A stretch of DNA of 64,000 nucleotides, taken from assembly GCF_006345805.1 (NCBI RefSeq), contig NC_043016.1, positions 11,098,001 through 11,162,000 of the forward strand, in the 5' to 3' direction. The DNA is from Octopus sinensis (lineage: Eukaryota). The notes beneath the pieces are model-generated. The model saw only the letters and a list, made by a program, of their open reading frames with translations. It searched no databases and was not told the origin of the DNA. A program made the position numbers and the translations under genes. Positions within the stretch are counted from its first letter, which is position 1; each line of letters opens with the position of its first letter. Below, in pieces: positions 3,176 to 52,332 of the stretch.

Positions 3176-4046
3176 AAAGTGGATGGCTTAGGGCAAATAA
3201 GAATGGCTAGAAAAACCGATGCATGGCCGATACCCATGTAGAGTGAACAAACCAGACGTAGAGAAACGAGACACTCATGTATGGACGAAGAGCTCAGAAC
3301 TGAAGGCTGAAACCGAAGGTTTTATCATAGCAGCGCAAGATCAAAGCTTGGCAACCAGGGCTTACCACAACAAGATAATGAACGATGGCACTGACCCGAA
3401 ATGCAGAATGTGCCGTAAGCAGGATGAAACAGTGAACCACATCTTAACTGGATGCACAGCACTTGCAAAAACCGAATATATTCATAGACACGATAGAGTA
3501 GCGCAATATTGCTATCTCCATTGGAATATATGTAAACACTACCAGCTTCCAACTTCAGAAAGATGGTACCAGCATAAACCTGAAACTGTGACCGGAAAAG
3601 ATGATGTAACGGTACTCTGGGACATGCCAATCAACACCGATAAAGAGATCAAGGCAAACATGCCGGACATAATCATCAAAGATAGGAAGAACAAGAAATG
3701 CTTAATGATAGATGTGAGAGCACCATCAGAGAGAAATGTGTCCATTGAAGAAGTTGAGAAGTTATTTAAGTACAAAGACCTAGAAATAGAAGTGACCAAG
3801 ATGTGGGGAGTGAAAAGCAGCACAGCACCAGTGATGATTGGAGCGTGAGTGCTAATTAAAAAGGGCCTTGATAAGCAGCCCAACAAACTCCCTTGCAGTG
3901 TTAACGTGGGAGAGCTTTCAGAAAATAGTGTTGCAAGTTTCCGCACACTTTTTACGCCGTGTACTCTCCATGAGATGAGGACCTGCTGTGACCCTAAGGT
4001 CAAGGGATGACCCCGGTTTAGCAGAAAACAACGGGCCATATTTTAA
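3176..4046 (+). mobile_element. 5'-truncated Dong/R4-like non-LTR element (CCHC finger plus restriction-like endonuclease)
   Basis: ORF 3219-3848: LKAETEGFIIAAQDQ, CRMC..ETVNHILTGC, HRHDRV, PDIIIKD..CLMIDV..P; flanked by (TTA/GTT)n and (AAT/GAT)n. Confidence 0.9.
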
Positions 4047-4156
4047 AATAATAATAATAATAATGATAATAATAACGACGACAATGATGATGATGATGAT
4101 GATAATAATAATAATGATAATAATAATGATAATAATAATAATGATAATAATAATAA
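4047..4156. repeat. (AAT)n/(GAT)n compound microsatellite
   Basis: Read directly. Confidence 0.95.
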
Positions 4157-6739
4157 TTTTTAAAGGGATTGACTAACTCTTCACAAAGGTAAACAGTCAA
4201 GACGAAGAGCACAATTCGATTCAAAGATATTTTATTAGTTGAATGATATTTCAGCAGTACGTCTGTCTTTGTCAAGTCCAAAATAAGAAGTGATAAAAAT
4301 TCAAAATTACAGAAATTTAAATGTAAAGTATGAACGAGAGCAACCAGCGTCCACACGTTGATGGAATGACATCATCAGTTTTTAAGTTACAGTTTTATAA
4401 CAGGCGAAAAGAAAAAGATAGAAAAAAAAGAAAAAAAGAAGACGACAAGAAAAAAAGAAAAGAAAAGAGAGAAAGAAGAATATTTAATCAAACAGTTTTG
4501 TATAAATTTGATGATATTCTCCTGTAATTTTATTTATTCCTCCAGTGCGTGATGTTAATAACCCACAAACATATTTCTCCTCTTGCATTTTGAGTATGGA
4601 AAGTGAAGCAGATTCAGAATATTTTCTGAGAATATGCACTTTCAAGTCTTCTTCAAAATTGCAGCCGCTTGAAACGAAATGCTCGGCAAGTTCTGTCGAA
4701 CTACTGTTATTGTGCCTGACGTCATATCTGTAGCTATTAAACCTTTTGTTTAATTGTTCCGTTGTACAACCAACATAAATTAAGTTGTGTTTTGTGCATT
4801 GTGCAGCGTACACCAAATGGGAATCTCTACATGTCCCACCTTCTGTATAAATCATAACATTTCTGTTATGGTTTCTGATGGAATTCACTTCACTCATATG
4901 TTGTTGCACAATGAACAGGGCTTATCTCTCTTGCGGCTGCTTTTTCAAAATACAGCGTACAGATACTCCAATGTTCGTTTTCTTGGAGTCAGAAATAGAG
5001 GTCAATAATTCTCTTATATTCTTATTCCGTCTAAGGGCTACAATAGGCGGCTGACGAAATATCTGTTTGAAACGAGGATATTTCTTCAACACATGCTGGT
5101 AACTTTCATGTAACACTTTCGAAATGCCAGCGAAATGTCGGTGCCAGTTAATCACTAAAGGAATTCTGTCATCTATTGTATTGTGTTTGCTAAAATTATG
5201 CGTGATGGTTTGACTATCTTTGCTAATCTTAGCTATTTCATTTGCTATTTCCTTTAATCGGGATTCACTGTAACCGCGTTTGACATAATGACGTACAAAT
5301 GCATTTGAGTGTTTCCAGTAATCCCCTATGAAGTACAAATCCGTTTTATCCTCAAGAATCGGGATTTCGGATTTGACCGAATAAGATTATGTGGATGATC
5401 GGAGCGGCGATGAAGATAAATGTGGGATGATGTGGGCTTGTAAAATAATCCTGTCACTATTCTGCCTCCAGAAAACTTGACTTTTGTGTCCAAAAATTCA
5501 ACGCTAGTTTTTGAGAAAAAACTAGACGTAAATTTTATGTTTGACTTAAGCCATAGTTTCTAGCATAACAGTCACAGAAATGCAAGAAGTCCATTAAACT
5601 ATCCTGAGATCCTTCCCAGACAAAAAATACGTCGTCAATGAACCGTAACCAGAGTATTGGTTCATGACCATGAAGGAATTTGAATGTCTTCAGTAACTGT
5701 GTCTCGAATTTCATCTTGAAGATATTAACGAAATTAACTGCCATAGGGGCTACCCATGGTGCAACCCTTCGTCTGGTGGTAAAATCTTTGTCTAGACTTC
5801 ATTGTGTTACTTTCTAACACAAACCTCAATAAACTACAGAGAAAATTTGATGGAATACTTTTGTTTTACCGCTTTTCGAAGGCATCCATGCATGCTTCTA
5901 CCCCTTCATTATGGTCAATATTGGGATATAAGGAAGAAACATCCATGTTTACCAAAAAACAGTTCTCGATACGGCTTCAGTGCTTAAAAAAAGTTGTTGA
6001 TTTTAGATATAAAATCAAAGGTATCCCGAATATAGGAACTTGATCGTTTTGCGACGGGGAGTAGAAAGCCATCCAGCCATTTCGAAATTTTGGCCGTGCA
6101 TCTTTCATATTCGCTGCAAATTGGGTGCATTGGAGGAAATCTTTCTAACGTTTTGTGTATTTTAAGGAGACCATAAAATACCGATGTTCTTCTTTCTGAC
6201 CATAAAGTTCTGAATTCGGCCTCATTAACGAAATTGTTTTCCTCCATTTCCAGAATTATTTTGTCAAGTTCTCTGTAATTGGGGATTTGAATCGAAGTTT
6301 TGTCACTTAAACTTCTTCACAAGCCGAAATATACTCACTGTTATCCATAATTACGACAGTGTCTCCCTTATCTGCCATCTTAATAACAATAGAATCGTTA
6401 TTAGCTAGACGTCGGGAATTTGCGAGATTATTCTAGGACTTCATTCCATTTGTTTTAAGGCTTTCTCTAATGCCTGCCTGGCAAGATTCAAGAAATTCCA
6501 GAAGTGCTTGTGAACGTCCATCCCGAACTTTATCTGGATACCATTTGGGATTCTTTTCGATCTAATTATGCCGGATTCGATCATCATCATTTTTATTTTT
6601 GTAAACATAGAGTTTTCTGACTCCTCGTTACCATTTTTTTCAAAAATATATTTTTTCAGCTTGTGACGGCGGACAAACTGAAATAGCCCTTGAGCTAGTT
6701 TATTCTTGCCGAAATTCTTAGTGCTTGGGCAAAAACTCA

Positions 6740-7101
6740 GGATCTTTTCGGTTTGAACAGCAGTTTTTTCTATTGGTGTCATATGAAATTATCACCCATA
6801 ATTATGACCCTAGTATCGATCTATTGTATTTCAAACTGTTTTAGGATTTGGGTTAGGGGTGGGGTGGGGGTGGGGGTATCTTTTTTTTTCTTCAGAAATG
6901 TAAATAAACCCAATCTGTTTCTTAAACGAGGGACATATTCATACGGCACAGAATGTTTTCACCTTCAATAGACGTCATTGATTGGTTGAAATTGCAGAAA
7001 TTGAAGAAAAAAACAACAAATATCTTACAAACTATAGAATTTTCTCAATAAAGCCACGTGGAAATTATTTTAAAAAACTGCCGTTCAAACCGAAAAGATC
7101 C
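6740..7101. mobile_element. MITE with ~30-bp TIRs and 8-bp TSD, inserted in the PLE ORF
   Basis: TIR GGATCTTTTCGGTTTGAAC(A/G)GCAGTTTTTT at both ends; TSD AAAACTCA at 6732-6739 and 7102-7109. Confidence 0.9.
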
Positions 7102-7419
7102 AAAACTCAATCCAAGCTCTAAAACTGAGATACCATTAGGCGAAAGTTTTAGTTTACATAAATTTATGACCGACTTATTATCTAGTGTGATGGTTTTTCT
7201 CGGGCAAGTGGTTTTCAGAATCTTTTTCTCATTAGATTCCTGACTACTTTTTGCTCGAAATCTTCACTTAAAACACGGAACCTATTGGGTGATAAAATTT
7301 GTTCTGAATGTTCATATGAGAAGTTGCAATTTTTAGTCGTCTTTCTAGGGGTAATCCATTTCTGGGTGGATGATAGAAAGTGAGTGACTTCTGTGGTTTT
7401 TGTAGACATTTGAAAAACC

Positions 7420-7650
7420 TTTACTTTCGGGAAAGGAACAAATTTATTATTTTCGAAGCAAAATCTCGCATTTTTGACTAATCAAATAGAAACTTCTCTG
7501 GAGCCTTTCCAATGACCAGTTCAAATGCATACGCCAGGGCAAAAGGGCCACAATCATATGCGCCAACTTGGGGATTAATTATATGAACTTGTTGAATTGC
7601 AGGAATAATGTTTGTTTGTGGTGAATACAACGTTGTTATTTGTGTCATTA
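7420..7650 (-). pseudogene. C-terminal half of a Ulp1/C48-like cysteine protease domain
   Basis: QVHIINPQVGAYDCGPFALAYAFELVIGKAPEKFLFD*SKMR..CFENNKFVPFP; Q-x4-DCG spacing of the catalytic Cys motif; the His/Asp part is not present. Confidence 0.75.
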
Positions 7651-7741
7651 GTTACTGCGGAATTTATTGTTTTCTAGGCAAAATCTTAAATGTGCTCGCA
7701 TTTTTGACTGATCAAATAGAAACTTCTCTGAAAGTTCTTGA

Positions 7742-7865
7742 GAAAGATCAGGTTAGACAAGAGAACAGGTCGATAAAAGTATGCGGAGTTTTAGAGACTG
7801 GCTATGCTATCCGCTCTTACCGGAGAGGGCCTAGAGACGACAGCACGACTGGCCTTCGTAAACAG
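7742..7865 (+). mobile_element. Detached Gypsy gag fragment
   Basis: Near-identical to 10518-10637 (GATCAGGT..GACAAGAGAACAGG...GAGACGACAGCACGACTGGC). Confidence 0.8.
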
Positions 7866-7904
7866 CTTTGTGTAATTATAAATAAATAAATTAATTAATT
7901 AATG

Positions 7905-7922
7905 ATAATAATAATGATGATG

Positions 7923-7993
<71 letters not shown>

Positions 7994-8115
7994 CCTTTCT
8001 GCTGTAGGCACAATGCCTGAAATTTTAGGGGAGTGGACCATTCGATTACAACGACCCCAGTGTTCCACTGGGACTTAATTTATCGGCCTCGAAAAGATGA
8101 AAGACAAAGTCGATT
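7905..8115 (-). mobile_element. (AAT)n plus SINE family B 3' half; inverted counterpart of 2350-2532
   Basis: Reverse-complement match to 2350-2532. Confidence 0.75.
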
Positions 8116-10369: not shown

Positions 10370-12743
10370 TGTGGGGATAAGATGAGTTGTCACGTCAACG
10401 GTCAAGGGACCTGCCTCCGTAAGATCAAAGTAGTCGCCAGGCCACAAGGCATCAACGATGTAACAAGTCTCATGGCCCTGTACCTGGAGGGACGTTTGCT
10501 GGCGCTGTACCTCGAGAACGATCAGGTAGACAAGAGAACAGGTTGATGAGTATGCCGCGGAGTTTAGGAGACTGGCTATGCTATCCGCTCTTACCAGAGA
10601 GGGCCTAGAGACGACAGCACGACTGGCATTCGTAAATGGCTACATCAGTGCAACAGCAAGAACTACCAGGCAATGAAAAAATTGGCAATACGCTCTCTCA
10701 TTGCTGAAGCACGCATGTCGACACAAAACACCAGGCGGAAGTCAGTGGTGGTGGTGGGAGCTGCAGAAGACCACGACGTAATGCAACAACCTATAAAGAA
10801 CGGGGAGAAGAAAACTGCTGTGGAGCGACAGATACCGTTCATGAGCCGGTGTTTCAAGTGCCAGGGACCGCACACGTCAATGGACTGTGCAGAGATGAAA
10901 CCCGGACTCGTTTTCTAGCAGTGCAGACAGACTGGGCATATTGCTCGAAACTGCAGCCAGGGAAAAGGCTACGAGGAAGTTGCTGCCTCTCGAATTTCAT
11001 CTGCGATCGAACAGGCATTCGTACCAGCAGTTTAAATCTTTTGTAGGGGGAAAGGTTTTCAAAGCCAGGGACGGACGGACGGAGTATTAAGGGCCGTCGG
11101 GTATAACTGTTTACCAGGCCCCTTAGCATTGATATCAAAGAGCTAACATAGAATGCGGGCCCTTCAGTGCTCCGAGCCTTCGGGCTATACTTGGTTGACC
11201 GACTGTTTTGTCCTCCTCTGTTCAAAGTCCTCGTGGATACGGGCTGTGCGATGTCTCTCGTAACCCCGAGGGTAGCAAAAAAACGGACGGGGACAAGTAG
11301 TGTTCGGGCGGTCAACGGCAGCGGAATTGGTTGTAACGATAGCATGGAGATAACTGTGCGGGTTACAACAATGAGGTAGCTGGCAATTGTCATTGACCGT
11401 ATGGTAGACGGAATTGCCGTGGTGATGCGGATGGACGCGATCAACCGCCTCGATGTCAGTGTTGCTGGGGACGTGGTTTCATTTTGGTGCTGCAGGGGTA
11501 TCGTGCACTGTGTGTCTACAACGTGGGAAGGAGCAGAGATCTGTGAGGGACTGTACTGCTTACACCGTTGGGGACAAATGTGGAGTTCGACGATCAGTGG
11601 TGGATAATAAGAGTGATACGGAAAGAGAAGCCTCCGATGCTGAAGAACAGACTACGCTGCTACCAGCATACCTTGAAAGGACATGCCAGGAGTGAGTTTG
11701 AAAGAGAGGTAGAGAGGTGGATTATGGAGGGTGTCCTTATCCTGTAAAAGGAGGAAGTGATGAGTGGAGTGCTACCACTAATGGCAGTAGTGGAGCAAAC
11801 AAAGAGCAAAATCAGGCCGGTACTGGACTTTCGGGAGAAGAATGGCCATGTATCATGCCACACGGGTAGCGAGGTAGCTGACATATGCAGTGAGTTGCTG
11901 CGCAAATGGAGACAGATGACAAGGATGGCAACGATGTGTCGACTTCAAGTCAACATATTTACAGCTCCATGTGAGCGAAAAACTGTGGCAGTATCAGCTG
12001 GTGCGATATAAGGGCCAGACATACTGTTTGACTAGGCTGGGTTTCAGGCTAAATTCTGTGACAAAGATCATGACGACAGTGCTCAGGTCTGTCCTGGGAA
12101 AGGTGGACGAGATAAGAAGGGTCACCAATTCCTATATGGACGACATCTTGGTAGACACGAGGCTGTAGTATCTGCTACCGAGGTTGTAAATCATCTCAAG
12201 AAGTTCGAGTTGATTACGATGCCAGTGGAACCAATTGCTGGCGGAACAGCACTTGGGCTCAAGCTTTAAAGAAATAAAACTGGCTCGTTTCGGAGGGGGA
12301 AATGAGATCCCGGAACTAGGTACCAGCATCAGCAGGAGAGCACTATTCTTGATGCGTGGGAGACTTAGTGGGTCGCTATCCAAACGCAGGGTGGCTACGA
12401 ACAGCATGCACAGCAACATCAAGAGACAAGCAGAAAGGGGCAAACTGGGTGGTGGGAGAGGGGATGGTGACGATGATGCAGGAGAACGTGGAGAGGACAA
12501 GAACAGAAGACCCAGTAAACGGGAACTGGTACGTGCCGAAATTGGAGAATGGAACTTTATGTAGCAATGCTAGCAGCATAGCAATAGGGGTTGTACTGGA
12601 AATCGGAAACGTTGAAGTGGGGGGACGTAGCCTGGCTTCAAAAATGAAACGATTACAATCACATCAACATGGGTGAGTTGGATGAAGTGCTGTAAGGGGT
12701 CAATTTGGCACTGAAATGGGGGCTGCAATTCATCAAAGAAGTT
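10370..12743 (+). mobile_element. Ty3/Gypsy internal region (gag, protease, RT, start of RNase H), frameshifted, integrase absent
   Basis: gag SLMALYLEG..ALYLE, YAAEFRRLA, knuckles CFKCQGPHTSMDC and CRQTGHIARNC; protease LVDTG at ~11230; IRPVLDFR; TRLGF; YMDD at 12133-12144. Confidence 0.9.
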
Positions 12744-29827: not shown

Positions 29828-30360
29828 AGTTACTGTATTACTTCTAAAAGTTACTGTATCACAAGTTACTGTATTACTTCTAAAAGTTACTGTATCACAA
29901 GTTACTGTATTACTCCGTAAGTTGAAAAAAGATTTGTAATCTTTTCGGCCTTCTAAGGCCTCGTCTTTTCATTTCTGCTGTTATCATTACATTTCGGAGA
30001 TTGTCTGGATTGTACAGTAAGTATTTTTGTGTAGGAAAATACTATCTGCAAAACAGTGAGTGCGTATAAATAATTTTTGAATTAAAACAAATATTTCGCA
30101 ATTTTCTGCAATTTTTTAAAAGTTAGCTGATGAAGAAGTCTTTATAGTGTTCGATAAAGGAACACAATCCTCAGAAAATTTTGAGAACAAGGAAATAAAA
30201 GAGAATATCAACATAGAATGGTCTAAACTGAATGACGTCACCGGGGTGAGAATTTTTCGTCTCCAGGAAACGTCAAAACTTTAGACCTTACGTGTCGACA
30301 AAGAGAACAACAATAACAGCAGCAGCAGTGACAACAACAACAATAATAGCTAGACCCGTG
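29828..30360 (+). mobile_element. Diverged Tx1-like 5' region headed by a 36-bp tandem repeat
   Basis: CTTTTCGGCCTTCTAAGGCC, GCTGATGAAGAAGTC and TGACGTCACCG align with 1135-1440 and 23530-23815. Confidence 0.55.
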
Positions 30361-30689
30361 AAAAATTCACGGAAAACACTAAAAATGTAAGCATCTGTAA
30401 ACAGTATACTGGTGCCATGAGAAATGTTTGTATATTATGACTGTCTGTCTTTGTGTTCTGAGTTCAAATTCTGCCGAAATCGACCTTTTTGGTTTAGTGG
30501 AGCGGAACGTTTTGCTGGTATTCTTTTATTCTTTTACTTGTTTCAGTCATTTGACGGTGACCATGCTACAGCCTGGTGTTTATTCTATCAGTCTTTTCTA
30601 CTGAACAACTAAATAACAGACGCGAACGCACCAACATCGGTGTGAAGCAATGGTGGGATAAACACAGACACAAATACACGCTCACACAC

Positions 30690-31093
30690 ACACAAACATA
30701 CATACATAAATACATACATACATACATACATACATACATACATACATACATACACACACATACATACATACATACATACATACATACATACATACATTCA
30801 TACATACATACATATACATACATACATCATACATACATACATACATACATACATTCATACATACATACATACATACCACACATACATACATACATTCATA
30901 CATACATACATACATACATACATACATACTACATACATACATACTACATACATACTACATACATACATACATACATACATACATACATACATACATACAT
31001 ACATACATACACACATACATACATACATACATACATATATACATACACACTACATACATACATACGTACATACATACATACATACATTCATAT

Positions 31094-31124
<31 letters not shown>

Positions 31125-31692
31125 CATACATACATACATACATACATACATACATGCATACACGCATACATATATACATACATACATACATACATACATA
31201 CATACATACATACACACATACATACATACATACATACATACATACATACATACATACATTCATACATACATACATACATACATTCATACATACATACATA
31301 CATACATACATACATTCATACATACATACATACATACATACATACATACATACACACATACATATATACATACATACATTCATACATACATACAGTCATA
31401 CATACATACATACATACATACATACATACATACACACATACATATATACATACATACATACACACATACATACATACATACATACATACATACATACATA
31501 CATGCATACATACATACATGCATACATACATACATATATACATACATACATATATACATACATACATACATACATACATACATACATACATACACACACA
31601 CATACTACATACATACATACTACATACATACATACATACATACATAAATACATACATACATACATACATATACATACATACATACACACACA

Positions 31693-31726
<34 letters not shown>

Positions 31727-32145
31727 CATACACACATACATACATACATACGTACATACATACATACATACATTCATATATACATACATACATACATACA
31801 TACATACATACATACATACATACATACATGCATTCATACATACATACATACATATATACATACATACACACATACATACATACACACATACATACATACA
31901 TACATACATGCATGCATGCATGCATGCATACATACATACATACATACATACATACATGCATGCATGCATGCATAGATTCATACATACATACATACATATA
32001 TACATACATACAGACAGGCATACATACATACATACATACAGACATACATACATACATACATACATACATGCATACATACATACATACATACATACATAAA
32101 TACATACATACATACATATATACATATATACATACATACATACAT
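30690..32145. repeat. ~1.45-kb (TACA)n microsatellite
   Basis: Read directly; source of the 507-aa YIHT pseudo-ORF. Confidence 0.97.
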
Positions 32146-32797
32146 GATGATGGCTGCCCCCTCGTTATCGAGTATGGCCATTGCATGAAGCTTAACTGTT
32201 GTTGGTGCTGTGATCGAATGTGACTTTTATTTGCTTTTTAAGGCTACAGCCAGCCATTCAGTTGAGACTCACAGCACCATCAACAATCATGAACAATGTT
32301 GTTATCATGCAATGCCTGTGCAAGAAGATTTTTTTTTAAGTGAGGAAAGGCTGTGCACTGAGTCAATCCCACTCACTATGCAACAGCAGCCATAATCCGA
32401 AAAAAAAGAACAAGTCAACATCATCGGTAACCACTGAGCCGCAGGTTTTATGTTGGAGTTATCCCAGTTACCTGAGTTACCTTCTCCTTGAAGGATGCCC
32501 TAACAAAGGCTAGGAGTCCTTCACTCCCAATGGTTTAACCGCACGATCGGGTATTCAGTCCGATTATTTCTATGTCCCCGCGCATGATACAGCCTTAAGA
32601 CATTTATTGGATGGCCGTTGACTCTCAGGAGTTCCTCCGCCCTTTGACGGGTTTTGTTTTTCATCCCGCAGGGTGACCAATAAACGCCCTCTTCACCAAG
32701 CAAGCTTGGTGGGTTTGCCGGTTTAGTCGCCGACGACCCGACCATGCAACAGGTTGTACTGGGTTACATGTTACCAGTAGCACTCGAAAGTAACCTG

Positions 32798-32828
<31 letters not shown>

Positions 32829-32924
32829 TACATGCACATACATACACAAACACATACCTAGAGAGAGAGGCAGACAGACAGACAGACAGTAAGTGTCAGT
32901 CCACAACGAAGTTTTCACCTCTCA

Positions 32925-33430
32925 CTCTCACTCTCTCTCTCTCTCTCTCTTTCTCTTTCACTTCCTTTGCGTCCCTCCTCTCTCCCGCTTTTCATTTAAC
33001 AATATGTATATCCATCTATGTATCTACTTCTCTTGCAATGAACGCCGTCATCACTCACTGTCTCTTTCACTCTCTCTCTCTATTTCTCACTCACTTTCTC
33101 TCTCTGCCTTTCTCTCACACTCTTTCTTTCTCTCTTAGTTCTTCTCTGGAACATTTAAAACACAAAACGAACACCGTCACCACTCACTCTCTCACTCTCT
33201 CTTTCATTCACTCTCTCTCATTCTCTCTCACTCTCTCTTTCCTTCACTCTCACTCATTCTCTCTCATTCTCTCTTTCCTTCACTCTCTCTCATTCTCTCT
33301 CACTCTCTCTTTCCTTCACTCTCTCTCACTCTCTCTTTCCTTCACTCTCTCTCGCTCTCTCTTTCCTTCACTCTCTCTCGCTCTCTCTCTTTTTCTTTCT
33401 CTCTTACTTCCTCTCTGCCCTCCTCTCTTT
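32925..33430. repeat. (CT)n-rich tract with ~36-bp internal periodicity
   Basis: Repeating CTCTCTTTCCTTCACTCTCTCTCATTCT units. Confidence 0.85.
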
Positions 33431-33549
33431 CGCTTTACCACTTCTTCGAAGTGTGACACCACACAGGTTCGTACAAAAATAAAAAAAAAACGCATTAATA
33501 TTATTGATAATAACAGGAACAACAAATACGAAAGAAATAAAACATAAAA

Positions 33550-33835
33550 ATGCAAATATCAACCCCCGTTTCTTTTGCGTGAGCGACGGGAAATATGGAG
33601 TGCTTCCACACAGACGAAGAAGAATTAAAATTTGCTAGAAAAATGGTTAAAAGAGATGGAAGAAGTCTGGCTCCAAACCCTCCAACGGACGCGATAGAAA
33701 ATATCGCAATATGCAAACAGGTCACATACTGTTGCGTCGGAGTTAAATCTCGGCAGATGGAAAATGCTCTCGTGAGCGAAAAGTTCCTTGGGTGTCTACG
33801 GGAACAAAAGTCCCAAACTTACAATCGCAAACCAA
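33550..33835 (+). mobile_element. Diverged Tx1-like ORF1 fragment
   Basis: VSFA..DEEELKFARKMVKRDGRSLAPNPPTD is homologous to DEEDLKMARKIVKENERRVSLNPPSD (24050-24130). Confidence 0.65.
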
Positions 33836-33842
33836 ATATATA

Positions 33843-34137
33843 GGATCTTTTCCTTTTGATAGCCAGCTTTCAACGCAATTTCTAGTTAACTAAACACTTT
33901 AAAAACTTCGTATACTGGTAGAATGTGTCAAAAGAAAACGTTATTTTCACTTGGCTTTCTTGAGAAAATTGTAATTTGTTCGTTTAACGTAGTTTAATTC
34001 TTCGAATTTTAACCAATCCTATGCTCTTTTCCTATGCTATGTTTTTTTTTTGATACATTCTACCATTATACGAAGTTTAAAAGTGTTTAGTTAACTAGAA
34101 ATTGTGTAGAAATCTGGCTATCAAAAGGAAAGGATCC
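33843..34137. mobile_element. MITE with ~90-bp TIRs, GGATC termini and 8-bp TSD
   Basis: GGATCTTTTCCTTTTGATAGCCAG...CTGGCTATCAAAAGGAAAGGATCC; TSD AATATATA/AATATCTA. Confidence 0.88.
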
Positions 34138-45880: not shown

Positions 45881-46084
45881 ATATATATATACATCACACA
45901 CATATATATATATATACATACATATACACACACACATATATATATATATACATACAAAAATACATATGTATATAAAGAGAGAGAGAGAGGTAGACAAACA
46001 GATATATGCATATATACAAACATGCATGTACATATACATTCATAGATATACATCTGTACATATATGCACACAAACACACAGATA

Positions 46085-46470
46085 TATTCTTTCACTCTTT
46101 TACTTGTTTTGGTCACTTGGCTGTGGCCATGCTGGAGCACTGCCTTTAGTCGAGCAAATCGACCCCAGGACTTATTCTTTGTAAGCCTAGTATTTATTCT
46201 ATTGGTCTCTTTTGCCAAACTGCTAAGTTACAGGGACGTAAATACACCAGCATCGGTTGTCAAGCGATGTTAGGGGGAGAAACACACACACACACACGTA
46301 TACATATATACGACAGGCTTCGTTCAGTTTCTGTCTACCAAATCCACTCACAAGGCTTTGGTCGGCCCAAAGCTATAGCAGAAGACACTTGCCCAAGATG
46401 CCACGCAGTGGGACTGAACCCAGAACCATATGGTTCATAAGCAAGCTACTTACCACACAGCCACTCCTAT
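46085..46470 (-). mobile_element. Full-length SINE family A
   Basis: Reverse-complement match, head CTTACCACACAGCCACTCCT. Confidence 0.9.
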
Positions 46471-46654
46471 ATATATTACCTTGCCAATCTACCTGGAAAC
46501 AGGTGAGGGTTGACAATATTGTCACAACAAAATTCTGCTGACTAAAGCAAGCATGGATCAGTGGATATTAAACTAGTGATGGTTATGATGATGACTATGG
46601 TGGTGCTGGTGGTGGTCACCATGGTCATAGTGATGATGATGATGCATACATATT

Positions 46655-46966
46655 TATATGTATGTATATGTATGTATGTATGTCTGCATATATGTATGTA
46701 TGTATGTGTGTATGTATGTATGTATGTATGTATGTATGTATGTATGTATGTATGTATGTATGTATGTATGTGTGTGTGTATGTATGTGTGTGTGTATGTA
46801 TGTATGTATGTGTGTGTGTATGTATGTGTGTATGTATGTATGTATGTATGTATGTATGTATGTATGTATGTATGTATGTATGTGTGTATGTATGTATGTA
46901 TGTATGTGTGTATGTATGTATGTGTGTGTGTGTGTATGTATGTGTGTATGTATGTATGTATGTATG

Positions 46967-46997
<31 letters not shown>

Positions 46998-47694
46998 GTA
47001 TGTATGTATGTCTGTATGTATGTATGTATGTATGTGTGTATGTATGTATGTATGTATGTGTGTATGTATGTATGTAAGTATGTATGTATGTATGTATGTG
47101 TGTATGTATGTACGTATGTATGTATGTATGTATGTATGTATGTATGTATGTATGTATGTATGTATGTGTGTATGTATGTATGTAAGTATGTGTGTATGTA
47201 TGTATGTAAGTATGTATGTATGTCTGTATGTATGTATGTATGTATGTGTGTATGTATGTGTGTATGTATGTATGTAAGTATGTATGTATGTCTGTATGTA
47301 TGTATGTATGTATGTGTGTATGTATGTGTGTATGTATGTATGTAAGTATGTATGTATGTCGTATGTATGTGTATGTATGTGGTATGTATGTGTGTATGTA
47401 TGTATGTAAGTATGTATGTATGTCTGTATGTATGTATGTATGTATGTGTGTATGTATGTGTGTATGTATGTATGTAAGTATGTATGTATGTCTGTATGTA
47501 TGTATGTATGTATGTGTGTATGTATGTGTGTATGTATGTATGTAAGTATGTATGTCTGTATGTATGTATGTATGTGTGTATGTATGTGTGTATGTATGTA
47601 TGTAAGTATGTATGTATGTATGTATGTATGTATGTATGTGTGTATGTACGTATGTATGTATATATGTATGTCTGTCTCCATGTATGTATGTATG

Positions 47695-47728
<34 letters not shown>

Positions 47729-47795
47729 TGTATGTATGCATGTATGTATGTATGTATGTATGTATGCATGCATGCATGCATGTATGTATGTATTT
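46655..47795. repeat. ~1.1-kb (TATG)n with an internal 68-bp period
   Basis: GTAAG marker at 47206, 47274, 47342, 47406, 47474, 47542. Confidence 0.95.
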
Positions 47796-48829
47796 GTGCA
47801 AGTGGTTTACAGTTGAACACCCTTATACACATCCAATCAATGACAAGATAAGAGTTGGTGAGCATGTTTTTTTATAGCTGAATGAACAAAGCCTCCACTC
47901 ATGCATGACATTAGATCACTATCTCCTGCTGCTACTGCTGCTACTACTGCTCTACTGCTACTGCTCTGTTGTTGTTGTTACTGTTGCCGAGGCCTTTTGC
48001 TAAAGATAACAACATTTTCGTATTAACGTGAAGATGCTGTGAGCAACTAAATGATTCTATCTTTCTACAGCAGCAAACTTTCTATTTTTAATGAATTAAA
48101 ATATTAGGTTTATCTGTCCTGCCTTACTTGATCAGAATTAATCATTAAGTTAATGACTTTTTTTTTTCTTTTTATTCATTTCATTAATTGCAATTTTTAA
48201 TTTATTACAAATTTTTGCCCCACGACATTAAATATATTAGCACAGACTGAGCTAGTCTTTTACATTTACTCTGAATTCTTCTATTGCTATTACATTTTAC
48301 AAGTACAGTGAAATCTAGGCTTTCTTGATGAGATCATAAAAATGACCAAAACATGCTTTGAGTTGTGTCCCTTATCTACTGAAATAATTAAAATAATTTC
48401 AACTTTTTTTCTTTGCGACATAATTATTTCGAGTTAGTCTTTAAAGTACTCCCTGCATTTAGCATTTAAATCATCCATATTCAGCCCAAATATTCACCAT
48501 ATTTTATATTCTAGCTGACTAAATCAGGCCTTTCACACTTACCTGATAATGTCATTCTGAAAATTAGAAGTCACATGATCAAAATTCTGATGGTACAAGA
48601 TAATCCATGATTAATTAAAAAAAACAATATGGATAAATAAGTATTACATTTGACAGAGTAATCCGAATGTTGAAGGACTAAACCTGTCAATATTAACTTA
48701 GCTATTGTTTTTCCTGCAGATGGCATTTCTGAGTTTTTCATTCTCCAAATAATTCTGTTCTTCTACACCTACCATTGTACTTTCTTGTGCGTTTCCCATC
48801 AGTATTTCCACAAGTACAGTGAAATTTAT

Positions 48830-49595
48830 GTCTAGCTAATGAGCTATAATAGATTTTAATTGTAGTCGACTGGTACTTTATTTTTATCAACATTACATGG
48901 ATGAAAGGCAAAATTGACCTCAGTGTACTTTGCTTGGACTTTATTTTATCACCTTCAGATGGATGAAATGAAAGAATGAACTCAACAAGATTTGAAATCA
49001 GATTGTAAAGTGCCAGTCGTGGCACTCCGTCGGTTATGTCAATGAGGGTTCCAGTTGATCTGATCAACGGAATAGCCTGCTCGTGAAATTAACGTGCAAG
49101 TGGCTGAGCACTCCACAGACACAATGTAGTTCTCGGGGAGATTCAGCATGACACAGAGTGTGACAAGACTGGCCCTTTGAAATACAGGTACAACAGAAAC
49201 AAGAAGAAAGAGTGAGAGAAAGTTGTGGTGAAAGTGCACAGCTAGGTTCGCCACCACCCCTGCTGGAGATTCATAGAGCTTTAGGTGTTTTCACTCAATA
49301 CACACTCACAACAGCTGGTCTGGGAATCGAACTGCAATCCCACAAGTGCGAGTCCACAACTCTAACCACTGGGCCATTGCGCCTCCACAAAGTGTCAGCA
49401 GATAAAACAACAAAGCATTTTCTTTGACATTTTCACGATTCAGAGTAGTCTCCCTTTTGAAATGTTATTCATTTCTCCTTTAGGTACAAGGCTCGAAATT
49501 TTGGGGGAGGGGACCAGTCGATTAGATCGACCCCAGTACACAACTGGCATTTAATTTATCGACCCCGAAAGGATGAAAGGCGAAGTTGACCATTT
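48830..49595. mobile_element. Cluster of SINE fragments (B-type pieces, internal-domain piece 49010-49195, tRNA head on minus at 49320-49385)
   Basis: GGAATCGAAC..CTCTAACCACTGGGCCATTGCGCCT is a reverse-complement tRNA-like head; GACCCCAG..TTTATCGACCCCGAAAGGATGAAAGG. Confidence 0.6.
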
Positions 49596-49711
49596 ACTCA
49601 TATTTTTTTTTTACCTCAATTCATTATCATATCTAGTTAGTTTAGTGGGAGATTTTAAGCTTGTTACCCATAGAGAAAGAGCTGGTTTCTAACTTAGATT
49701 CAAGGCCCTTT

Positions 49712-50107
49712 CTATGTATGTATGTCCGTACGTACGTATGTATGCATGTATGTATGTATGTAGTTATGTATGTATGTATGTATGAATGTATGTATGTATG
49801 TATGTATGTGTATGTATGTATGTATTATGTATGTATGTATGTATGAATGTATGTATGTATGTATGTATGTATGTGTGTGTGTGTGTATGTATGTATGTGT
49901 ATGTATGTATGTATGTATGTGTGTGTGTATGTATACGTGTATGTATGTACGTATGTATGCATGTATGTGAGTATGTATGTATGTATGTATGATGTGGTAT
50001 GTATGTATGTATGTATGTATGTATGTATGTATGTATTTATGTATGTATGTATGTATGTATGTATGATGTGGTATGTATGTATGTATATATGTATGTATGT
50101 ATGTATT

Positions 50108-50138
<31 letters not shown>

Positions 50139-50233
50139 GTATGTATGTATGTATGTATGTATGTATGGATGGATGTATGTATGTATGTATGTATGTATGT
50201 GGGTATGTATGTATGATGTGATATGTATGTATG

Positions 50234-50265
<32 letters not shown>

Positions 50266-51011
50266 TGTATGTACGTATATGTATGTATGTAGGTTTTGTA
50301 TGTATGGATGTATGTATGGATGGATGTATGTCTGTATGGATGGATGTATGTATGTATGTATGTATGTATGTACGTATGTATGTATGTATGTATGTATGTA
50401 TGTATGTATGTATGTATGTACGTATGTATGTACGTATGTATGTATTATGTATGTATGTATGTATGTATGTATGTATGTATGTGTGTATGTATGTGGGTAT
50501 GTATGTATGTTTGTATGTATGTATTACGTATGTATGTGTGTGGGTATGTATGTATGTACGTATGTATGTATGTATGTATGTACGTATGTATGTATGTATT
50601 ATGTATGTATGTATGTATGTATGTATGTATGTATGTACGTATGTATGTATTATGTATGTATGTATGTATGTATGTATGTATGTATGTATGTGAGTATGTA
50701 TGTATGTATGTGGGTATGTATGTATGTATGTATTAAGTATGTATATATGTATGTATGTATGTGGGTATGTATGTATGTTTGTATGTATGTATGTGTATGT
50801 ATGTATGTATGTTTGTATGTATGTATGTGTATGTATGTATGTATGTACGTATGTATGTGTGTGGATGTATGTATGTATGTATGTATTTATGTATGTATGC
50901 ATGTATGTATGTATGTATGTATGTATGTACGTACATATGTATGCATGTATGTATGTATGTAGTTATGTATGTATGTATGTATGTATGTATGTATGCATGT
51001 ATATATTTATG

Positions 51012-51045
<34 letters not shown>

Positions 51046-51095
51046 TGTATGTATGTATGTATGTATTAGTATGTCTGTATGTGTGTATGTATGTA
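49712..51095. repeat. ~1.4-kb (TATG)n microsatellite
   Basis: Read directly. Confidence 0.97.
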
Positions 51096-51097
51096 TA

Positions 51098-51250
51098 GGT
51101 GCAGGCATGGCTGTGTGGTAAGAAGTTTGCTTCCCAACCAAGTGATCTTGTGTTCAGTCCCACTGTGTAGTACCTTGAATAAGTGTCTTCCACTTTAGCC
51201 CCAGGCCAACCAAAGCCTTGAGAGTGGATCTGGTAGTCGGGAACTGAAAC
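51098..51250 (+). mobile_element. SINE family A, 5' part
   Basis: GGTGCAGGCATGGCTGTGTGGTAAG..GTTCAGTCCCAC. Confidence 0.75.
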
Positions 51251-51343
51251 TTCTTGTGTGTCACAGTGTATTACCAAACCAACTATCTGACAAACCGGGG
51301 ACTGGAAGTGTTCCAAATTTCTGGAGAAAGCCTAAATATAAAA

Positions 51344-51739
51344 TCTTTATATATAAAAGTGAGGTTGTGTGCTGTCTGTCTCCTATGATTTAGATTCCTA
51401 ACTACTCCCACATTTTGCGTTGCAGTTTAACCAAAACCGGGTATCTTATAGTCGTGATTCATATCGAGCCCTTCTGGGTATTAGTGCGCGTCTACGATGA
51501 GTCTACGATTTTAAAAATAATTTACCATAATTTTTTTTCCATTTTAATGCATTTTTTCGCTATTATATAAGGGAAGTAACTCTCTAAAAAGTCTACGATG
51601 AGTCAACGATTTAAAAAAAAATTTACCATAAATGCATTTTTTTTGCTATTTTTTTTGCTATTTTTTGCTATAACTCTCTAAAAATGCTTATATAGTTATT
51701 TCCCTTACAAACCCGAGCAACGCTGGGCGATACTGCTAG
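51344..51739 (+). mobile_element. Non-autonomous Helitron, same family as 34644-35030
   Basis: A|TCTTTATATATAAAAGTGAGG...GCGATACTGCTAG|T. Confidence 0.88.
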
Positions 51740-51918
51740 TATAAAATAAACTATAAAAGATAAACAAATTGTATTTAACATTGAAATCAACACACTTTTG
51801 AAAAGCAGTTTGATATTCATTAATTCACTTCAAATTTAAAAATGTATTCTACTGCTCTGTGTATATACAGTATAATGTTTTTAGGATGAAAATTGAATGA
51901 AGAAAAATAAAGAACATA

Positions 51919-52332
51919 GGCGCAGGAGTGGCTGTGTGGTAAGTAGCTTGCTAACCAACCACATGGTTCCAGGTTCAGTCCCACTGCATGGCATCTTGGG
52001 CAAGTTTCTTCTGCTATATAGCCCCCGGGGCCGACCAAAGCTTGTGAGTGGATTTGGTAGACGGAAACTGAAAGAAGCCCGTCGTATATATGTATTATAT
52101 ATATAATATGTGTGTGTGTGTATGTTTGTGTGTCTGTGTTTGTCCCCCTAGCATTGCTTGACAAACCGATGCTGGTGTGTTTTTATGTCCCCGTCACTTA
52201 GCGGTTCGGCAAAAAGAGACCGATAGAATAAGTACTGGGCTTACAAAAAATAGTCCCGGGGTCGAATTGCTTGACTAAAGGCGGTGCTGCAGCATGGCCT
52301 CAGTCAAATGACTGAAACAAGGAAAAGAGAGT
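51919..52332 (+). mobile_element. Full-length SINE family A
   Basis: Complete head to tail; AACAT on both flanks. Confidence 0.92.

Follow-up and report, generated by a model that had tools for sequence, protein, structure and literature searches.

We examined a 64,000-nucleotide stretch of the Octopus sinensis genome (RefSeq assembly GCF_006345805.1, contig NC_043016.1, positions 11,098,001 to 11,162,000 of the forward strand), referred to here as the window, which contains the decayed remains of a Penelope-like element (PLE). PLEs are usually described as minimal retroelements, with one open reading frame (ORF) encoding a reverse transcriptase (RT) and a GIY-YIG endonuclease (EN). Comparison of the window copy with related proteins shows that, as read from their sequences, intact members of this family encode one predicted polyprotein of approximately 1,190 to 1,460 amino acids, in which a leader with a 2A-like motif is followed by a coiled-coil N-terminal region, a protease domain, a variable linker that is probably disordered and then the PLE part. 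We hold this identification of the element and of its architecture with high confidence, the role of the protease being a separate matter that is considered below. An earlier note on this DNA, made from its letters alone, had proposed that the ancestral element encoded a single protease-linker-RT-EN protein, and uninterrupted ORFs in related sequences bear this out.

The protease and the reverse transcriptase share one open reading frame in intact relatives

A search with the translation of the protease, linker and N-terminal region of the window copy recovered a protein of 370 amino acids (P0001) that is 83% identical to the window. The reading of P0001 is unbroken and passes in turn a 2A-like motif (DPSVEPNPGP), a motif in the N-terminal part, a complete protease-like domain, the linker and VINLSKLKLSRDDVSVLELGLSFCPSTK, and the same domain order was found in P0003, a protein from a sequencing-run assembly (34% identical). 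Two further octopus proteins belong with these: P0002, a UniRef entry from Octopus bimaculoides named [quoted passage not shown] and P0004, an Octopus sinensis protein spanning the RT. A HMMER profile built from P0003 and P0001 gave 5,732 matches among 1.84 billion representative proteins, and the whole profile was matched by proteins of 1,109 to 1,461 amino acids. Most family members come from ENA and Logan contigs. A word-indexed protein search with the long N-terminal alignment was saturated on low-complexity words and gave 7 matches.

Single ORFs of 839 to 1461 amino acids containing both the protease signature Q.G..DCG and the RT signature R[YF][ILV]DD fell into 15 clusters with no more than 50% mutual identity. 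Pfam matches to RVT_1 and GIY-YIG were located downstream of the protease domain, in one ORF, in P0007, P0013, P0030 and P0053, and pattern matching in P0154 showed that the ORF with the protease also holds RT and GIY motifs. The genomic loci L002, L003 and L004, which come from other assemblies, showed the same gene order in decayed form. Other PLE copies therefore carry the protease segment too, as the earlier note had expected of its reading. From approximately residue 320 of P0005, P0024 and P0007 to their C terminus, the window copy was colinear with these full-length fusions, which agrees with the proposal of that note that one element extends from the protease remnant through GIY-YIG. 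One cluster at 90% identity comprises 13 sequences, including ORFs of 1,217 and 1,244 amino acids on contigs of approximately 4.5 to 4.7 kb, and this points to recent activity in some host.

The coiled-coil region is not uniform among the relatives. P0001 lacks approximately 110 amino acids of it (columns ~145 to 257 of alignment A4), including a conserved W[IL]P[DE]L.L motif, and this segment is present in P0003, P0006, P0021 and others between the N-terminal motif and the protease.

The PLE-linked domain is related to Ulp1/SENP proteases

We aligned 22 PLE-linked protease domains (alignment A5; 55% mean column identity). Residues H47, H53 (in GHF), D68 (in YDSLN), Q104, G106 and the D109-C110-G111 triplet were invariant in all 22 domains. 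The order His, Asp, Gln, Cys defines Ulp1/SENP active sites. The intact His-Asp-Cys triad, which the earlier note had suggested seeking in the same ORF of relatives, is thus invariant across the family alignment.

Structure prediction led to the same enzymes. The AlphaFold2 model of P0001, based on a 10-sequence alignment, had a pLDDT (predicted local distance difference test) of 80 to 89 over the protease domain. In a Foldseek comparison with the PDB, this model matched human SENP5 (E value of 4e-5) and yeast Ulp1 (E values of 5e-4 to 2e-3) with a probability of 1.0 and a target TM-score of 0.5 to 0.56 over approximately 180 columns; the next matches were the clan-CE effectors SnCE1 and XopD. 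A comparison with a viral fold library contributed nothing decisive. The 22-domain profile, searched against PDB sequences, found a Ulp1-like SUMO protease as its best match (E value of 0.009), followed by SENP5 and SENP1, and the profile of the whole N-terminal region (A4) gave a marginal Ulp1-like match (E value of 0.58). The Pfam family Peptidase_C48 (PF02902) was recognized in P0036 with 28.9 bits against a cut-off of 20.7, and P0032 scored 19.6 bits, below the cut-off. The single ORF of P0036 runs on into VVNLSQTKLTEAEKKVLERGLNF (VVNLS..VLERGLNF) and ADKGG, which are PLE N-terminal motifs. Outside the PLEs, the related proteins P0144, P0057 and P0119 also exceeded the PF02902 threshold, and precomputed PF02902 annotations were attached to many of the database matches.

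Several results weigh against this assignment. The sequence link between the domain and solved Ulp/SENP structures is marginal, with E values of 0.009 to 0.2. Peptidase_C48 gave no match in P0001 to P0003 or in the seven full-length members that were scanned, and the 60-amino-acid protease remnant of the window had no Pfam match on its own. The proteins missed by Peptidase_C48 showed only weak matches to the YopJ family. Nevertheless, the invariant residues, the fold matches, the profile match and the Pfam match of P0036, taken together, identify the PLE-linked domain, as judged from sequence and modeled structure, as a divergent Ulp1/SENP-family (clan CE) protease. The Ulp1/C48 assignment of the earlier note is upheld by the SENP5 and Ulp1 fold matches, the conserved His, Asp, Gln and Cys and the P0036 match; the Peptidase_C48 check that it had proposed succeeded with P0036 and failed with the window remnant.

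In a neighbor-joining tree of 158 domains, drawn without support values, all PLE-linked protease domains grouped together. They sat apart from Ulp(+PHD) proteins with pogo-like DDE_1, YqaJ or polycystin contexts, and the nearest non-PLE relatives of the PLE-type domain were Ulp(+PHD) proteins, including one with a fused DDE_1 transposase. This topology is consistent with a single capture of the domain from another transposon-borne Ulp1-type gene. Among the non-PLE relatives (P0153, P0122, P0132, P0135, P0116 and P0144), P0153 has the Ulp-like domain at the C terminus of a pogo-like transposase (HTH_psq + DDE_1 + Ulp + PHD), and in one relative the Ulp-like domain precedes a YqaJ recombinase domain. 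The Ulp-like domains at the end of polycystin-like gene models are probably transposon fragments that were merged into the predictions.

Two other explanations of the fusion and of the domain were weighed. In an accidental fusion, a piece of some other transposon or host gene with a protease would merely lie beside a PLE. Two observations would suit this: the decay of the window copy is too advanced for it to demonstrate a single ORF alone, and related Ulp-like domains occur elsewhere, with pogo-like DDE_1 and PHD (P0153), with YqaJ (P0122) and in polycystin gene models. However, many diverged members have ORFs that cross the junction without a break, the motifs keep their order and spacing, the window is colinear with the fused proteins across the junction and the PLE-linked domains group apart from other contexts in the tree; we regard an accident of this kind as extremely improbable. 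Chance juxtaposition of two elements was rejected on the same grounds. The domain itself might not be a protease but a YopJ-like acetyltransferase or a catalytically silent module that binds SUMO or ubiquitin. The clan-CE fold and its triad are also those of YopJ enzymes, and weak or faint Pfam matches to Acetyltransf_14 (YopJ) were seen in P0003, P0160 and P0119. These matches were below threshold, however, and the fold match to the YopJ-type enzyme PopP2 was poor, with a TM-score of approximately 0.2 compared with the 0.5 to 0.56 of SENP5 and Ulp1. Both the oxyanion Gln and the signature Q-x-G-x2-DCG, which is typical of Ulp1/SENP, were invariant, and the invariance of the triad argues against a silent module. 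We consider an acetyltransferase or a silent module highly unlikely, and a divergent Ulp1/SENP-family protease is the assignment that we follow below.

Intact members begin with a 2A-like leader

Twenty family proteins begin with M.DL..YR..IG.F and a hydrophobic stretch, and 18 of these 20 leaders contain [IV]ExNPGP at residues 56 to 139. The leader-bearing relatives are P0005 to P0030, P0154, P0157 and P0158, with N-terminal leaders of 56 to 153 amino acids; among the aligned full-length members the deepest motif lies at residue 153 (P0013). In 2A peptides the core motif follows a hydrophobic or Leu-rich helix, and hydrophobic stretches, for example LTFFLFVSLAADLYAN and VCFLITISLATAAQIS, were read directly before the 2A-like motif here. 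The core of 2A peptides has been described in a canonical form, (G)DxExNPGP, and a non-canonical form, GxExNPGP (2026 preprint PMC13405545). At position -7 most members have Ser, where the canonical form has Asp and the non-canonical form Gly, and this weakens the case for a functional 2A peptide; P0013, P0019 and P0028 do have Gly there, and further members have Cys, Asn or Arg. An Asp sits two residues further upstream of position -7 (DPSIExNPGP). Ribosome skipping at this predicted motif is plausible. The window has no 2A-like leader because the copy is truncated.

The window holds a single dead copy of the element

The window contains one copy of the PLE, which was confirmed as a dead, 5'-truncated insertion in an octopod genome. 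Its features are listed in Table 1. The coding remnants are broken by at least eight frameshifts and by several stops in frame, the 3' untranslated region probably runs toward position ~4200, and the copy is in itself an ordinary dead insertion. The sequence readings that the earlier note gave for this element were all present, and the position of a frameshift alone was corrected: it had been put near 7260, and the boundaries of the tblastn high-scoring segment pairs place it at approximately 7251 instead.

Table 1. Features of the Penelope-like element copy in the Octopus sinensis window (positions are those of the window)
Feature	Position	Strand	Basis or remark
Whole PLE copy, coding remnants	4484..7735	-	Colinear with P0005, P0024 and P0007; stop codon at 4484-4486
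Partial tandem duplicate of the protease C-terminal segment	7660..7735	-	Internal repeats D3/D4, tblastn
Ulp1/SENP-like (clan CE) protease, C-terminal third (predicted)	7425..7672	-	Family alignment, tblastn, fold of intact P0001
Linker, protease to PLE body	7171..7424	-	Motifs KW..P[KR]K and NRF..L; frameshift near 7251
PLE N-terminal conserved region, start (VINLCKLKLSPNGISVLELGLSF, GxKF/Y-type)	7102..7170	-	Last 8 bases, 7102-7109, are a copy of the duplication made by the miniature inverted-repeat transposable element (MITE)
MITE, 362 bp	6740..7101	.	30-nt terminal inverted repeats and 8-bp target-site duplication
PLE N-terminal region, continued (CPSTKNFGKNKLAQGLFQFVRRHKLKKY...)	6441..6739	-	tblastn, colinearity
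Reverse transcriptase region	5332..6440	-	Pfam RVT_1; several frameshifts and in-frame stops
RT C-terminal region and linker to EN	4830..5331	-	C-x12-C-x2-C motif, CSLC at 4917-4906
GIY-YIG endonuclease (LVYAAQCTKHNLIYVG...) to stop	4484..4829	-	In ORF 4484-4909

Protease homology in the window begins at approximately 7672, near residue 161 of P0001. Frame 1 of the minus strand reads QQVHIINPQVGAYDCGPFALAYAFELVIGKAPEKFLFD, a stop and SKMR, with the catalytic Cys codon at 7552-7550; the reading carries on in frame 0 as CFENNKFVPFPK...NRFRVLSEDFEQ and in frame 2 as KSVINLCKLKLSPNGISVLELGLSF. This remnant retains the oxyanion Gln and the catalytic Cys only (Q-x4-DCG), and the His/Asp part is missing because the copy is 5'-truncated at approximately residue 161. 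The main protease copy has an in-frame TAG in place of CAG and a 10-bp deletion. Upstream of it, bases 7731-7660 of the duplicate (72 nucleotides) encode an undamaged EKFLFDQSKMRAHLRFCLENNKF, corresponding to residues 219 to 242 of P0001 with 95.8% identity by tblastn, and the part of the duplicate that was read directly matches P0001 exactly. The internal repeats D3 and D4 have spacings of 230 and 220 bases, respectively, and this difference reveals the 10-bp deletion in the main copy. The unit of the tandem duplication is 230 bp (P0001 residues ~161 to 242; 7660-7735 versus 7441-7500), and its first copy is cut off at residue 219. The local duplicate with its ancestral reading, including CAG in place of TAG and the bases deleted from the main copy, had been described in the earlier note and was seen here. 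Downstream of the protease, the linker of the window reads KW..PRK and NRFRVL, and low pLDDT values over this part of the P0001 model suggest that it is likely to be disordered.

The MITE inserted in the region of the PLE N-terminal motif. Its inverted ends at 6740-6769 and 7072-7101 are 97% complementary, and its target duplication, TGAGTTTT on the minus strand, is found at 7109-7102 and 6739-6732. An 8-bp target-site duplication is the size typical of hAT-type elements. Removal of the MITE restored colinearity with residues 355 to 370 of P0001 in tblastn, and the coding sequence resumes as CPSTKNFGKNKLAQGLFQFVRRHKLKKY; the earlier note had likewise placed the MITE at 6740-7101 and joined the reading across it. 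No further copies of it were found in the 64-kb window.

After the MITE the minus strand continues with CPSTKNF...FVRRHKLKKY, then ADKG, RT motifs with FIDD, a Cys stretch and the GIY-YIG ORF. Once the pieces had been stitched together, Pfam matched both catalytic domains above the curated cut-offs: RVT_1 with an E value of 9.7e-9 (35.7 bits; cut-off, 29.6) and GIY-YIG with an E value of 6.1e-5 (23.7 bits; cut-off, 22.6). The RT region was 72 to 85% identical by tblastn to Octopus sinensis LOC115222486 (P0004), and the catalytic FIDD lies at 5642-5631. A DKG motif upstream of the RT core is a feature of PLEs (Arkhipova 2006, cited in PMC8557442); the window has KMADKGDTVVIMD in frame 2, with ADKG at 6375-6364, and relatives have ADKG, SDKC or ADKS. 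The GxKF/Y N-terminal motif and the linker motif before the EN were both defined in PMC8557442. At the former, the window reads LELGLSF (G-L-S-F), which fits GxKF/Y in position and context, and Lys is replaced by Ser or Thr family-wide. The CCHH motif of PLEs includes two Cys between GIY and YIG; at this place the window has VYAAQCTKHNLIYVG (C-x2-H), C-x2-C was read in P0008 and P0030, and C-x2-H in most of the remaining members.

Two features looked for in support of the PLE assignment were not found and count against it. No hammerhead ribozyme was detected in the window, L001, L002 or L004 at the Rfam gathering threshold (E value of 1 or below where a relaxed scan was run), and no pseudo-long terminal repeat was found in the window, where the copy is 5'-truncated, or in L001, L002 or L004. 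Naiad PLEs likewise do not have canonical hammerheads (PMC8557442), so the hammerhead is not universal among PLEs.

At its 5' junction the PLE adjoins an unrelated repeat at 7737-7862. This fragment of 126 bp is 89% identical to 10511-10636 and reads like a piece of a retrotransposon gag. Microsatellites of the (ATT)n/(ATC)n type flank the PLE on both sides, at 4040-4155 and 7903-7995; they may be one target microsatellite that the insertion divided, or they may belong to two copies of a different repeat. A search for an empty site, or for the other half of the flanking repeat, that would define the target returned the 126-bp repeat fragment as its sole match. Elsewhere in the window, GC skew in 2-kb windows falls to -0.50 at 30 to 32 kb and rises to +0.44 at 50 to 52 kb; these swings (30001-34000 and 46001-52000) may stem from strand-biased repeats or from microsatellites.

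A possible role for the protease in escape from host control

The architecture suggests how such an element could operate. The ribosome would skip at NPG|P and free the leader, and the remainder would be a protease-RT-EN protein. The protease may act as an isopeptidase for ubiquitin-like modifiers (Ubls), for which SUMO is the best guess from the fold matches, and its targets would be either the ribonucleoprotein of the element or host factors at the target site. SUMO- or ubiquitin-dependent silencing, restriction or degradation would in this way be blunted. To this role, in which SUMO or another Ubl would be taken off host factors or the ribonucleoprotein of the element and escape would be aided, we give somewhat less than an even chance.

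Integration would follow the route that is established for PLEs generally, namely nicking by GIY-YIG and target-primed reverse transcription that starts at the nick (PMC8557442). Incomplete reverse transcription would explain the 5' truncation within the protease domain, and we attribute the start of the window copy inside that domain to such incomplete copying. After insertion, the copy would have gained the 230-bp tandem duplication at its 5' end, the MITE, the frameshifts and the stops.

The protease might alternatively be a cis-acting processing enzyme that cuts its own polyprotein in the manner of adenain or of pS273R from African swine fever virus (ASFV). Both of these viral proteases belong to clan CE, and clan-CE viral proteases, namely ASFV pS273R, were among the weaker fold matches. 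The protease is located inside a long polyprotein beside a linker that is probably disordered, and a Gly-Gly pair stands exactly 9 residues before GIY in 10 of the 11 full-length members with a recognizable GIY, as well as in the window. This pair is at approximately 4838-4833 in the window (EGGTCRDSHLVY), and the members that have it are P0007, P0008, P0013, P0015, P0018, P0030, P0154, P0159, P0053 and P0024. However, the pair may be an ordinary feature of the PLE endonuclease, and none of 13 proteins had a Gly-Gly in the linker between protease and RT. The best fold matches, moreover, were to the Ubl-specific SENP5 and Ulp1 and not to viral processing enzymes, and canonical PLEs function with one RT-EN protein that is not processed (PMC8557442). 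We consider self-processing unlikely, and removal of Ubls from the element or from host factors is the role that we prefer.

Significance of the architecture

Put as a whole, the proposal is that a widespread PLE lineage, recently active in some animals, gained a 2A-like StopGo leader and a SENP/Ulp1-like isopeptidase that would strip SUMO or another Ubl from the element itself or from host silencing factors; we see the prospects of this full statement as evenly balanced. Transposons have acquired Ubl proteases several times. A conserved SENP-like domain that looks catalytically intact, together with a 2A-like leader, in a broad lineage would widen the picture of PLEs as minimal elements. The family also offers compact proteins, with a domain of approximately 160 to 190 amino acids and a short leader. 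One practical consequence concerns annotation: gene models of the kind of the Octopus "ubiquitin-like protease domain-containing protein" (UniRef100_A0A0L8FR10) probably represent pieces of transposons and not host SUMO proteases.

The earlier note knew of no description of this architecture. We likewise found no report of a Ulp1/C48 domain, or of a 2A peptide, in any PLE in the searchable full-text literature, a search that did not extend to Repbase, Dfam or subscription journals. Within that literature, the combination of a SENP/Ulp1-like protease with a 2A-like leader in one PLE is a layout for which no counterpart was found. In a text search of the 2021 PLE survey, the sole protease-related item was a Josephin-like motif in one charophyte Chlamys family (PMC8557442).

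Comparison with known elements

Canonical PLEs with a C-terminal EN (Neptune, Nematis and Penelope/Poseidon; Craig et al. 2021, PMC8557442) likewise occur as 5'-truncated copies, and a Cys-rich linker before the EN is shared with them by some members of the present family and by the window. In contrast to these elements, the family described here adds a 2A-like leader and, between the coiled coil and the GxKF/Y-type motif, a Ulp1/SENP-like protease. It differs from them further in having Ser or Thr in place of the Lys of GxKF/Y, in having C-x2-H rather than C-x2-C in many members and in the lack of a detected hammerhead.

Transposon-borne proteases of the Ulp1 family are also found among DNA transposons, in CryptonF and CryptonS of oomycetes (PMC3212892) and in the pogo-like P0153. 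In these elements, however, the protease is often a separate protein or is located before a PHD finger, there is no RT, and the domains sit apart from the PLE-linked ones in the tree.

The closest functional analogues are the nematode elements NeSL and Utopia-1_TSP, which have an N-terminal Ulp1-like protease (Kojima and Jurka 2015, PMC4640811). They differ in being elements that lack long terminal repeats (non-LTR elements), with a restriction-like endonuclease, zinc fingers and target specificity, and no 2A-like leader was reported for them (PMC4640811). The endonuclease of the present family is GIY-YIG, and the resemblance is one of function and not of membership. Dualen/RandI and other non-LTR elements carry in their ORF2 an N-terminal 2A-like peptide and a Ubl- or ubiquitin-directed cysteine protease upstream of the RT (PMC13405545; Odon et al. 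2013), and the preprint suggests a possible link between 2A-like stalling and the fused deubiquitinase domains of ORF2; its text does not mention GIY-YIG, Ulp1 or peptidases. Unlike the family described here, Dualen/RandI are non-LTR elements with an APE-type endonuclease, and their proteases have Josephin or OTU folds and are not of clan CE. If the proposed function is correct, PLEs would be the third independent group of retroelements to have joined a Ubl-directed protease to an RT, after NeSL/Utopia and the Dualen-type elements, and a third case would strengthen the idea that retrotransposons repeatedly need to evade host control based on SUMO or ubiquitin.

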